DNA from: Bugula neritina
Taxonomy: Eukaryota > Animalia > Bryozoa
Direction of reading: 5' to 3'
NCBI GenBank assembly: GCA_964035545.1
Contig: OZ037771.1
Coordinates: 3,421,628-3,485,627, forward strand
DNA: 64,000 bases
Shown here: positions 729 through 63,494 of the stretch, in pieces
How the letters are laid out: each line of letters opens with the position of its first letter
Position numbering within the stretch: position 1 is the first letter of the stretch
Translations under genes and position numbers: made by a program
Notes under the pieces: generated by a model
The model's database searches: none
What the model saw: the letters and a program-made list of their open reading frames with translations, nothing else
What the model was told of the DNA's origin: nothing

Positions 729-1681
729 TTAGAGTATTCCTCCATAACCTAGCACACATATAAGTATAACCATTATGGTGGTATATACAGAAGGGTGGGT
801 AGTAGTTCCGTGTGAAAAGGCTTCGGCTAAATTAGAGTTGTTGAGGAAATTAAAGAAAGGTGTTGTGCCTTCCGTAACAGAGATTTTACTAGTGACAGAC
901 ACTTGCTCTGTTGGCGCATTAGTGGATGGCTTAGATGTAGGGGGTTTGGTAGTAGGGGGTTGAGTGGTGGATTCAGTGGTGGCAGGGGGTTGAGTGGTGA
1001 GGGATTGAGTGGTGGATTGAGTGGTGATGAGTTGAGTGGTGATGGGTTGAGTGGTGAGGGGTTGAGTGGTGGATTTAGTGGTGGGGGATTGAGTGGTGGG
1101 GGATTTAGTGGTGGGGGATTGAGTGGTGATGGGTTGAGTGGTGAGGGGTTGAGTGGTGGGGGATTGAGTGGTGGGGGATTGAGTGGTGAGGGATTTAGTG
1201 GTGGGGGATTTAGTGGTGGGGGATTTAGTGGTGGGGGATTTAGTGGTGGGGGATTTAGTGGTGGGGGATTGAGTGGGGGATTTAGTGGTGGGGGATTGAG
1301 TGGTGGGGGATTGAGTGGTGATGGGTTGAGTGGTGGGGGATTGAGTGGTGGGGGATTTAGTGGTGGGGGATTGAGTGGTGGGGGATTGAGTGGTGAGGGA
1401 TTGAGTGGTGGGGGATTGAGTGGTGAGAGACTGAGTGGTAGAAGAATCAGCTACTGAAGATGGGGTCACACCTGCAGACTTGATGACTGTTGCAGCCATA
1501 TCTCTATCACCAGAAATGTTGGCTGATTTTTCCAACTTCATCATGGGAGTTGATGCAGTAGTTGATTCATTGTCAGGCATCATAGCTGAGGTGGTAGACT
1601 GCAGGTTAGCAATCAGCTGTTGTTCGTCCTCGGCTATATTCATTTCTGCGGCTTCATTCAGAGCTTCCTCCATCCCCTCAA
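729..1681 (-). CDS. Terminal exon of gene A: acidic linker, TTQSP mucin stalk and GPI-like/hydrophobic C-terminal signal
   Basis: ORF 729..1709. The acceptor ataaag|TT at 1681 is phase 1 and matches the phase-1 donor CCAG|gtacaa at 2166. Its start VEGMEEALNE resembles gene B exon 44642 ([10 protein letters not shown]). Confidence 0.7.
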
Positions 1682-61800: not shown

Positions 61801-63494
61801 GTACCTAGTACTGTACATACTATTTTAATTAGTTATTGGGGGTAATTTTTCAAAATACATGATTGAGTTTGTTTTAATTAAGAGAAGAATATTTCTTTTG
61901 TTTGTTTTTAAAGGAGCTTCATAAAATTACTTTGATGCAGCAACTGTGTATGCCAACATATCTGAATGTTCGTATATGTTTGAATCTAACACAGTTTTAT
62001 TTTTCTCCAAAACTAGTTGTTTTTTATTGAAAGTTTAAGATTTACTCATATCAACATTAAACAAAATCAGAAAATTTTCATTATGATTTAAAAAGTAGCT
62101 GGGCATCCATTACCTTAGAGATGAAAATTCTCACTTGAGAGTATTACTGTTTTATATTTAACCACCTTTAGTTTTGTTGCTTTTAATAAGAAAAGATATA
62201 CAATATATATATGTGCGCGCGTGTGTGTATATACTGTATATACAGTATATACTGTATATACAGTATATATGTATATACAGTTACACAGTATATACTGTAT
62301 ATTGTGTACCATATATGCCTGTGTGGCAGTTGTTACTCGCCTGGTCCCTTTGATTATTTAATTAGTAATTTCTGTGTTTTTTGTTTGCAGTCACTACTAC
62401 TACTGCGGGTAGTTGTGGAGGCACCCTCACTGCTTCTTCTGGTACTCTAACATCTCCCAACTACCCCGAAGATTTTCCTGAAAACTCCTACTGCGTGTGG
62501 AATATCACGGTACCCAGTGGAGTTGTCTCCCTTACATTTTATGATGTAGACTTTGAGGGCGATGCTGCAGGATGTACTGACAATCTTTATGTGAGTTGGT
62601 AGCTGTCGTCTGTGTTTTATATATGTTTGGTTGAAAATTTGCTCAAATGACACTAGCTTTAAAAAGATTTTTGAAAAAATGGCTACATTTCCTTACTTAA
62701 AAATGTGCTCTTGTTCCTTTTTTATTAGTGAGGTAACACATTTTTCAACGTGAAAAAGTCATTTTTTTAAAAATAAATTGTAAGCTAAATTCAAAGCACT
62801 ATGAGGCTTACTCTTGATACCCAATGTCTAGCTCTCATTGTATAAATAACATGAGTTTACTATATTTTTAGTGTGTAACATTACTTATATCAATAAGGGT
62901 GTCAATAAATATAGCACTTTTCACTCAAGAACTATTTTTGCCAAATTAGATTCTGTCCAAAAGTTGTTTATAGTTATTACTTTGTGTGTTTTTGTAAGTG
63001 TTAAAACTTATAACAGTCTTTACAAATATTCTTTCATTTGTTATAGTTTTTTAGTATTGTATAATATTTATCATGCGGTCTTTAAATTCTATTTAGATTT
63101 GAAATGTTGGACGTGGATGTTATTTTAGTTATCAAAGCCAAAGAAACGGTTGATGAAGCTGCATATTAGTATAATTTAAAATTATAATACTGAGATTTCT
63201 TATTTTCAGGTTTATAATGTGCCCAGCAATGACTATTTCTTTTCTCTGTGTGACTCGGCTGTTCCTGTAACTGTGACTGGAAACTCCAGCTCTATCAGTG
63301 TTGTCTTCATCAGTAATAGCTCTAGTCAAGGTCATACAGGGTTCTCTGCTAGTTGGTATGCTACTGTAACTACATCGACTGTTTCCCCAACTCTTTCCAC
63401 TAACACAGACGTTGTGGAGTGCTCTTTTAAAGCTGCTCTTCGTGCAAACTTGTTGTTATTAGTTTTTATATCATTTTTGTATTTTGCTTACTAA
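29549..63494 (+). CDS. Gene B: probable single giant gene. Signal peptide, Gly/Ser/Pro linker, unit 1 (N-region, TSP1, RGM-like GDPH vWD), TTEG mucin, unit 2 (same), PTTTT mucin, CUB, GPI-like tail
   Basis: Signal peptide at 29549 (exon 29549-30032). Unit 1 exons span 30357-43838. Phase-1 bridge exons 44642-44707 and 45567-47051. Unit 2 exons span 47232-60123. Then 61036-61101, 61297-61776, 62391-62590 and 63210-63494. No separate signal-peptide exon found for unit 2 and no anchor exon for unit 1. Confidence 0.65.
29790..29975 (+). repeat. Coding Gly/Pro/Ser repeat (PSGGPSGS)n
   Basis: 12/24-bp periodic units in exon 1. Confidence 0.9.
31880..32392. repeat. Intronic 43-bp minisatellite, about 11-12 copies
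   Basis: gttctactaaacttctatatacactatactgatgtttaggcat units starting 31947, 31990, ... Confidence 0.95.
34699..34913 (+). mobile_element. tRNA-derived SINE, copy 2
   Basis: Homologous to 20950-21160; B-box GGTTCAAACTC. Confidence 0.75.
35720..35915. repeat. (TA)n microsatellite
   Basis: About 190 bp of TA dinucleotide. Confidence 0.98.
39533..39605 (-). mobile_element. Degenerate tRNA-like sequence (second SINE family head or tRNA pseudogene)
   Basis: Minus strand GCCCATGTAGTGTAATGGTTAGCAC...GATTCCC: A-box and D-loop are recognisable, T-arm and stems are degenerate. Confidence 0.4.
39792..39938 (+). CDS. Thrombospondin type-1 (TSP1) domain exon, unit 1
   Basis: [22 protein letters not shown]; symmetric phase 1-1 exon, 147 nt. 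Confidence 0.9.
42130..42262. repeat. (CTCA)n degenerate microsatellite
   Basis: Tetranucleotide tract. Confidence 0.85.
42763..42815. repeat. (GT)n(GCGT)n compound microsatellite
   Basis: Direct; a similar tract lies at 51995-52060. Confidence 0.9.
45567..47051 (+). CDS. Mucin-like bridging exon ([12 protein letters not shown] repeats) joining units 1 and 2
   Basis: ttgtag|GA acceptor is in frame with ORF 45596..47086. Phase-1 donor after TKK-G (gtcgca, weak), equivalent to AKK-G|gt in exon 1. Confidence 0.7.
45640..46866 (+). repeat. Coding 36-bp tandem repeat (12 aa), about 34 copies
   Basis: aatgtagaaacaactgaaggaaccactgcagagcct units with AEP/AVS variants. Confidence 0.97.
47232..60123 (+). 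CDS. Gene B unit 2
   Basis: Same exon series as unit 1; GDPH at 57175-57186; [16 protein letters not shown]...RRRRKR...CNYDC. Confidence 0.85.
51180..51380. repeat. Intronic 35-bp minisatellite x5 ending at a splice acceptor
   Basis: gcaggtatataacatatactatatactatatacta units. Confidence 0.9.
54466..54578. repeat. 20-bp tandem repeat immediately after a splice donor
   Basis: cttctacgttatatattact x5. Confidence 0.9.
55233..55376 (+). CDS. TSP1 domain exon, unit 2
   Basis: [22 protein letters not shown]...C; phase 1-1, 144 nt. Confidence 0.9.
55560..55769 (-). mobile_element. tRNA-derived SINE, copy 3
   Basis: Reverse complement of the element at 20950 and 34699; B-box GGTTCAAGCCC. Confidence 0.75.
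60243..60350. repeat. 16-bp tandem repeat (ttgacctcagtttacc)
   Basis: About 6 degenerate copies. Confidence 0.8.
61320..61760 (+). repeat. Coding 15-bp repeat (PTTTT)n mucin stalk
   Basis: Within the phase 1-1 exon 61297-61776. Confidence 0.95.
62391..63494 (+). CDS. CUB domain (two exons) plus C-terminal hydrophobic GPI-like signal of gene B
   Basis: [33 protein letters not shown]...FYDVDFEG...CTDNLY|VYN...LC...[19 protein letters not shown], then ...[16 protein letters not shown]. Confidence 0.9.

Follow-up and report, generated by a model that had tools for sequence, protein, structure and literature searches.

A 64,000-nucleotide stretch of the genome of the bryozoan Bugula neritina (assembly GCA_964035545.1, contig OZ037771.1, positions 3,421,628 to 3,485,627 of the forward strand; hereafter the window) raises the question of what kind of protein is encoded by three large, mutually homologous multi-exon units that each contain a Gly-Asp-Pro-His (GDPH) motif. 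An earlier description of this DNA, made from its letters without database searches (the sequence-only reading), had taken the units for strongly diverged and greatly enlarged relatives of RGM/hemojuvelin proteins. The analysis presented here indicates that they are probably intact, selected genes belonging to a lineage-specific family, apparently confined to bryozoans, whose products are very large glycoproteins that are secreted or displayed at the surface, which carry a domain homologous to RGM_C and have a putative role in adhesion, coat or matrix. Throughout, the units are lettered A to F; positions in Mb or kb with a C prefix are genome coordinates, with C7 denoting the contig that carries the window, and all other positions are those of the window. 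Genome-wide scans covered the 216.0-Mb assembly.

The window is AT-rich (32-40% GC) with many introns, and its three paralogous units are colinear, with A on the minus strand and B and C on the plus strand (Table 1). Comparison of the three regions with each other by tblastx yielded 13-20 colinear conserved blocks per unit pair across 16-18 kb, far above chance. A six-frame motif scan located each of three diagnostic motifs once per unit, in the order and on the strands that the sequence-only reading had given: GDPHVK at 5370-5387 (-), 41428-41445 (+) and 57175-57192 (+); STGLL, the start of STGLLxxGC, at 2595-2609 (-), 43113 (+) and 58902 (+); and CxYDC at 2457-2471 (-), 43236 (+) and 59037 (+). 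A fourth motif, the strand (V/L)(V/L)SNE(W/Y), was exact at 41599 and 57346 on the plus strand, in B and C, and reads MVSNEW in A, just outside the pattern described. The residues G, D, P and H were invariant in all ten aligned sequences, which held for the three units, for D, E and F and for fragments from other species, and the domain cysteines were all invariant. In VWD-type domains, a GDPH motif in the first turn self-cuts between Asp and Pro, for which the Asp and the His are required, and the protein can fragment where no disulfide holds the first strand (PMC10880436). Splice sites were picked by GT-AG dinucleotides, phase and conservation among paralogues, and the resulting models of the N-terminal region are approximate. 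Six exons span the pre-domain segment and the domain, and units A-D agree in both the positions and the phases of the junctions; contigs from other species showed their exons in this order as well.

Joined (spliced) models were compared in local scripts using mafft, hhalign and the ratio of nonsynonymous to synonymous substitution rates (dN/dS), and scans of Pfam, PDB and sequence databases were run exon by exon. The RGM alignment used for comparison comprised 24 full-length RGMs (397-470 residues) together with bryozoan fragments, all from two database searches with true RGM exons; the full-length sequences span a brachiopod, molluscs, a nemertean, a scorpion, fishes, amphibians and birds. 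Against this alignment, a family profile made from A-E and exon fragments from other species gave an hhalign probability of 95.6% (E 1.2e-8) over 193 columns, extending from GDPH to CxYDC, and 94.7% (E 6e-8) after two species had been added. Reversed-template controls reached at most 0.2%, and 100 column-shuffled family queries scored 15.4 +/- 2.8, with a maximum score of 25 and a maximum probability of 2%, compared with the observed score of 69.7. The GDPH-exon profile alone gave 76% (E 2e-5). A diverse RGM set was needed to obtain this signal, as the family alone against a bryozoan-only RGM alignment was too weak (2%). In the alignment, VGDPHVKSL..(F/Y)(E/Q)TC of the family is paired with FGDPHLxTF..FQTC of RGM, LLSNE(Y/W)F with PLIDNxxL, ITLIV with the strand after the RGM loop, the segment ahead of CxYDC with LQLCxxGCP, and CxYDC with SCVFD. 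These profile comparisons support the proposal that the GDPH domain, approximately 270 residues in length, is a strongly diverged RGM_C-type domain.

Further evidence for this relationship came from two tandem, shorter RGM_C-like genes, F1 and F2, at C6:3.244-3.265 Mb, both of which have tails resembling glycosylphosphatidylinositol (GPI) signals. The genome-wide Pfam RGM_C scan detected a true RGM at C1:527-537 kb and, below the cut-off, the GDPH exon of each F gene as well as the last exon of F1. When the F exons were scanned one by one, RGM_C was the sole significant Pfam family (22.1, 22.5 and 18.7 bits; E 9e-5, 7e-5 and 1e-3), with the 18.7-bit match covering RGM_C profile positions 189-219. 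Profiles of the GDPH exon and last exon of the window family found the same F exons genome-wide, and hhalign related the F type both to the window family (99.0%, E 2.6e-18) and to RGM (97.9%, E 5e-13). Exons with GDPH, xGLLxxGC and C..C..Cx(Y/F)DC and a hydrophobic tail are common to the window family and to the shorter genes outside the window, namely F1, F2 and the loci on C1 and C7 described below. The F type, however, is without the acidic linker, its N-terminal part is shorter and different, and its Pfam RGM_C match, the only one among these genes, is weak. As judged from these alignments, the F type is a bridge between the window family and RGM. We also observed a one-base phase problem at the junction into the xGLLxxGC exon of F1, which may represent a missed exon, an assembly error or decay.

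Besides F1 and F2, the genome-wide search with the GDPH-exon profile identified a fourth unit, D, just past the start of the window (C7:3.4088-3.4209 Mb, minus strand), and a more distant gene, E, at C7:0.21 Mb. In gene E (C7:0.205-0.214 Mb), a domain of the Kunitz/BPTI type comes together with a long mucin exon that forms a single open frame of 1034 codons; after these follow part of the family N-terminal region, the RGM_C-like domain and, directly behind it, the hydrophobic tail. The last-domain-exon profile identified three extra loci on C1, at C1:17.158-17.175 Mb and C1:33.780-33.785 Mb, with xGDPH(V/I).HL, SGLLVHGC and Cx(F/Y)DC exons; their GDPH exons have ..(L/V)C(N/D)SPG.. in place of the (Q/E)TC motif, and from these motifs the loci are classed as a further subfamily of the same superfamily. 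A phmmer search with the GDPH exon against 1.84 billion representatives returned ten matches, nine of them single-exon fragments from metagenomes or Logan contigs and one spurious, with no annotated full-length protein among them.

The encoded proteins are several times the size of an RGM, as had been claimed. The units span 16-17 kb, and in each of them about 800 conserved, cysteine-poor residues lie ahead of the GDPH domain, with TSP1, mucin and CUB sequences in addition. This N-terminal region had no match in Pfam, the ESM Atlas or PDB, in agreement with its earlier description as a long region without an assigned family; the Atlas look-up of its best-conserved exon gave nothing (score 0.79). 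Among 30 single exons scanned, Pfam matches were limited to TSP1, CUB, Peptidase_S28 and PT repeats. TSP1 exons were present in B and C, and a motif scan did not find TSP1 in A or D. The first half of the CUB domain of C scored 49.5 bits (PF00431, cut-off 21.4) over profile positions 1-59 of 110, and the second half, from 63180 onward, had no Pfam match and was read by eye. The short acidic linker of other members corresponds in A to a 319-residue T/D-rich repeat, inserted in the same loop and contained within the GDPH exon.

The mucin stalks described by the sequence-only reading correspond to real mucin-like exons in all three units (Table 1), and its statements on the two ends of the proteins were borne out in part. 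Every unit has an ATG and a hydrophobic stretch ahead of a conserved LN(G/S)(R/K)xPLP start, and that of D is a textbook signal peptide; in B and C, the stretch is perhaps intron polypyrimidine sequence instead. Hydrophobic C-termini were found for A and C, with mean Kyte-Doolittle values over the last 18 residues of 2.06 and 1.78, respectively, but not for B, whose last open frame gave -1.16. A, C, D, E and F1 all terminate in 14-19 hydrophobic residues without a cytoplasmic tail, in which they resemble RGMs. The stretch from GCP to the Cys cluster includes a basic site, reading RPKR in A, RRRRKR in C and RRKR in D, with similar sites in E, F1 and other species and none in B; in A, C and D it occupies what we take to be the position of the furin motif RNRR in hemojuvelin. 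We also noticed a conserved acidic exon after the domain, ending in ..(Q/M)AASGG.xPG, at 2149-2373 (-) and 43565-43885 (+), as well as in D and one further locus, and missing from C. Its acidic cluster and Ser-Gly motif resemble a glycosaminoglycan attachment site, and some members may be proteoglycans.

Compared with RGMa, RGMb, RGMc/hemojuvelin and C. elegans DRAG-1, all of which consist of Pfam RGM_N and RGM_C, the C-terminal domain of the window family is homologous over its full length and has the same motif order: GDPH(L/V)x(T/S)(F/L)..(Q/E)TC, (L)(I/L)(D/S)N(E/N)(Y/F/W), beta-strands, LxxxGCP, a basic site and C...C(V/x)(F/Y)D. The hydrophobic tails of A, C and D may likewise correspond to the GPI-type C-terminal signal of RGMs. 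In contrast, A, B and C depart from the compact RGM architecture of signal peptide, RGM_N, RGM_C and GPI signal in about 400-470 residues. The window proteins are 3-4 times larger, and more if B and C are fused; they add the N-terminal region of about 800 residues, a long mucin stalk, TSP1 (B and C) and CUB (C), and a variable acidic or mucin linker of 12-320 residues is inserted after (Q/E)TC..LEYF. Moreover, the window family is multi-copy and clustered, whereas the canonical RGM is single in the same genome. RGMs also have a cysteine four residues before GDPH (C-G-L-F-GDPH), which contributes to the disulfide linkage of the two chains once they are cut; it is absent here, the corresponding positions of A-E and F being occupied by V, T, A or M (RVTVxxVGDPH).

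Several observations weigh against the RGM_C assignment and the picture of an anchored, self-cleaving protein. Single exons of A-D gave no match, even with E allowed up to 10, to Pfam RGM_C, RGM_N or VWD, the profiles that the sequence-only reading had proposed for a check; genome-wide, PF06534 (RGM_C; curated cut-off 27 bits) was without a match in the window; and when PDB sequences were searched with HMMER profiles of three exons (the GDPH exon, its F-type counterpart and the last domain exon), no RGM or VWD match was found. The last-exon profile alone aligned with RGM in the right register (GCP on GCP) but was not significant (2.3%, E 0.021). The strong hhalign statistic was obtained with spliced models for which conservation and GT-AG sites, without RNA support, were the guide, and the local hhalign run was made without secondary structure. 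At the protein level, an anchor signal is lacking in the model of B, and the number of cysteines in the pre-domain segment is odd (3), so that a disulfide across the cut is possible. The homology signal is a sum of several weak colinear matches, convincing only on the joined models.

Given these points, it is worth asking whether the domain might be a generic GDPH-type VWD domain, such as those of MUC4, SUSD2 and FCGBP, that resembles RGM through the common VWD core alone, in which case 'RGM-like' would be a misnomer. RGM_C has itself been described as a partial VWD domain (PMC4395201, PMC10880436), and genome-wide the Pfam RGM_C profile weakly matched (E 0.08-0.2) true VWD/NIDO-type exons on contigs C4 and C2 via the GDPH region. 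MUC4, SUSD2, FCGBP and MUC2/MUC5AC are likewise large mucin-type extracellular proteins with the GDPH Asp-Pro motif in the first turn of a VWD-type sandwich, and the absence of a cysteine beside the first strand is a particular likeness to the MUC4 type, in which the protein may split into two subunits (PMC10880436). However, the hhalign match continues in register into the RGM-specific C-terminal part (LCxxGCP, then C...CVFD), the F-type last exons match RGM_C at profile positions 189-219, and the C-terminal half of the domain is RGM-patterned (GCP, CxYD) in proteins without C8/TIL/E, NIDO or AMOP. No exon matched Pfam VWD (PF00094) at E up to 10, a result obtained without a direct profile comparison to a VWD alignment. 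We consider a generic VWD origin unlikely. A second possibility is that these are RGMs in function as well, acting as neogenin ligands and co-receptors of bone morphogenetic proteins (BMPs) with an added N-terminal extension, given that the RGM_C-type domain, GDPH, the position of the furin site and the GPI-like tail are all held in common. The part of RGMs that binds BMP and growth differentiation factors is RGM_N, a three-helix bundle with three disulfides (PMC7354924), and for this domain (PF06535) the real Pfam match in the genome was the true RGM on C1, with none in the window family. Comparison of the pre-domain segment with RGM_N by hhalign was not significant (E 0.098, compared with 0.041 for the reversed control), and the segment has 3 cysteines rather than the 6 of RGM_N. 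A bona fide RGM orthologue is, furthermore, present at C1:527-537 kb, with an exon 98% identical to Bugula neritina RGMB. Because RGM_N was not detected and the canonical RGM is present, a BMP co-receptor role is unlikely, and we found no basis for the BMP-modulating role that had been suggested; canonical RGM function for the window family as a whole appears quite improbable. During the RGM_N scan we also encountered many near-identical weak matches (27 bits) with in-frame stops at C239:300-392 kb and 1.21-1.30 Mb; these were rejected as an RGM, as they resemble a tandem repeat or a contaminant or ciliate contig.

The units could also be decaying duplicates whose motifs are relics. In line with this, no annotated protein with these exons was present among the 1.84 billion representatives, no RNA run covering the locus was found, one donor in A is non-GT, and F1 has the frame problem described above. 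On the other hand, every exon in the models is open, A-D share their splice phases with each other and with contigs from other species, and GDPH and all domain cysteines are invariant. Over approximately 380-400 codons of the domain region, dN/dS was 0.29 for B and C (dS 1.2) and 0.28 for A and D (dS 1.35). Such ratios, at dS values of 1.2 or more, indicate old copies that are constrained by purifying selection, and the pseudogene explanation is very improbable.

Based on the data presented above, we favor a plan for each unit in which a leader would be followed by the region of about 800 residues, TSP1 (in B and C only), the RGM_C-type domain of about 270 residues, and an acidic segment with a mucin stalk, with CUB added in C and a GPI-type hydrophobic signal ending A and C. 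RGMc, for comparison, is autocleaved at GDPH with its chains remaining disulfide-linked, is cut by furin at RNRR to give soluble hemojuvelin, and is GPI-anchored (PMC4395201). By analogy, the domain in the window family would fold as a beta-sandwich and cut itself between the Asp and Pro of GDPH in the secretory pathway, leaving a large N-terminal fragment and a stalk-anchored C-terminal fragment. As the cysteine before GDPH is absent, the two fragments may be held together mainly non-covalently. The proteins would be exported and, in the case of A, C and D, displayed on the mucin stalk via a GPI anchor, and the furin-type site of these same members, which B does not have, would permit shedding of the entire ectodomain from the stalk. 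By the same analogy, a role as a cell-surface or matrix protein in adhesion or as a coat is our best guess and the most likely one; cleavage, anchoring, shedding and biological role are all read from resemblance to characterized proteins. Cross-linking via a reactive Asp anhydride, which the sequence-only reading had raised, is entirely speculative. A more speculative extension, which we regard as doubtful, is that bryozoans have turned the RGM-type self-cleaving domain into a breakaway joint for the cargo of about 800 residues (plus TSP1) on a GPI-anchored mucin or proteoglycan stalk. After autoproteolysis with no disulfide nearby, the cargo would be held by beta-strand insertion alone, and force, pH or furin could set it free, for instance when larvae attach, cuticle is formed or colonies fuse.

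Whether the window holds two genes of this family, as the sequence-only reading had it, or three depends on B and C. We lean slightly towards fusion of B and C into a single gene, which would run from the exon at 29549 to the GPI signal of C and encode about 3,500 residues with two GDPH sites, one in each of its two RGM_C-like units; the alternative, three independent genes with B as a secreted, unanchored form, is nearly as probable. The stop codon of B (47084-47086) and the ATG of C (47177) are separated by 90 nucleotides, compared with about 1.46 kb from the stop of A to the ATG of D on the other strand, and B stands alone in having no hydrophobic tail. B and C share one acceptor sequence, CCTTGTAG/TG, ahead of the conserved start, and the DNA similarity between the two units (87%) begins 15 nucleotides before it. 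Phase-1 donors at 46986, 47031 and 47052 in the mucin exon of B fit the acceptor of C, although those donors are only moderate, and strong phase-1 donors at 29976 and 29994 fit the acceptor of B at 30357. Arguing for separate genes, all four units (A-D) have retained an in-frame ATG and hydrophobic stretch right before LN(G/S)(R/K)xPLP, including the textbook signal peptide of D, but hydrophobic residues would equally result from translation of a T-rich acceptor tract. The open frame at 29549-30040 (+), with its signal peptide and PSG/PT repeats, belongs either to a separate gene for a small secreted protein or to B as its true first exon. If B and C are fused, the product would be one polypeptide with two breakaway joints in series.

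Table 1. Coordinates of the paralogous units and of the exons and domains modelled within them (window positions).
Feature	Position	Strand	Basis and remarks
Unit A, whole gene	729..17927	-	ATG 17927-17925, stop 731-729; without TSP1; tblastx blocks against B and C, list of open reading frames, C-terminal tail
A mucin exon, T/S/P-rich	732..1718	-	Hydrophobic GPI-signal-like tail 732-788; translation and hydropathy
A last domain exon	2418..2658	-	Furin-like RPKR 2523-2534, then C..C..CSYDC
A GDPH exon	4191..5426	-	GDPH codons 5376-5387; ends in MVSNEW...GTLARWS strands; within one open frame 4170-5426
Candidate true first exon of B or of fused B-C	29549..29975	+	Good signal peptide, then PT/PSG repeats; Pfam PT E 2.5e-8
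Unit B	30305..47086	+	Alternative ATG 30305, conserved acceptor AG/30357, stop 47084-47086
B TSP1 exon	39776..40015	+	Pfam TSP_1 E 2.8e-7, 31.1 bits (cut-off 21.6)
B pre-domain and RGM_C-like exons	40522..43292	+	40522-40685, 40988-41156, 41389-41679, 41844-42014, 42484-42596, 43064-43292; GT-AG and phase choice consistent with C; GDPH 41428-41439; no furin-like site
B mucin exon	45530..47083	+	518 codons, ETTEGTTA(E/V)xNV repeats; no hydrophobic tail; phase-1 donors 46986, 47031, 47052
Unit C	47177..63494	+	ATG 47177 or acceptor AG/47232; stop 63492-63494
C TSP1 exon	55136..55429	+	Domain about 55256-55376; Pfam TSP_1 E 2.1e-7, 31.5 bits (cut-off 21.6)
C pre-domain and RGM_C-like exons	56157..59093	+	56157-56320, 56715-56883, 57136-57426, 57945-58118, 58425-58540, 58853-59093; GDPH 57175-57186; furin-like RRRRKR 58974-58991
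C mucin exon, (TTTTP)n	61233..61781	+	Translation, hydropathy
C CUB domain	62369-62599 (first half); inside 63180-63400 (second half)	+	Pfam CUB E 6.1e-13, first half
C hydrophobic GPI-signal-like tail	63444-63491	+	Hydropathy

Other features of the locus were also apparent. Between A and B lies a serine carboxypeptidase S28 gene (PRCP/DPP7-like) at 22682-28046 (+), three exons of which match Pfam Peptidase_S28 (E 8.1e-23, 3.8e-16 and 8.3e-18). Within unit A, an exon pair of the N-terminal region is doubled in tandem, at 10904-11910 and 13033-14098 (-), with ..FY.FVLTGPAGEV.. in one exon of the pair and ..DVYNTFYSA(I/V)CP.. in its partner; possible explanations are an internal duplication, mutual exclusivity of the exons or the presence of pseudo-exons. 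The similarity between B and C is patchy, with 87% DNA identity at 47217-47526 against 30342-30638, protein identity of 75-90% at the 53.4-kb and GDPH exons and 35-55% elsewhere, and an overall dS of about 1.2. This unevenness suggests patches of gene conversion between old duplicates.

To our knowledge, RGM_C has been regarded as diagnostic of a single small family of fixed architecture comprising RGMa, RGMb, RGMc and DRAG-1, and our literature search found no paper on RGM_C-type domains outside the canonical RGM architecture, nor on an expansion in any invertebrate; the shorter RGM_C-like genes of this genome likewise had no description that we could find. In Bugula neritina, the domain appears to have been reused in a new protein design: it is duplicated at least 10 times in one genome and joined with a large N-terminal region, TSP1, CUB, Kunitz and mucin stalks, with RGM_N lost. 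The window family is a lineage-specific expansion, with a new architecture, of a domain family already known, rather than a new kind of system, and it accounts for about 60 kb of bryozoan coding sequence without a matching annotated protein in the collections searched. The purpose of GDPH autocleavage has been stated to be still open (PMC10880436). These proteins provide a natural set of divergent sequences with which to address that purpose, and they allow one to ask whether the cut may be a release mechanism where the tethering cysteine is absent.

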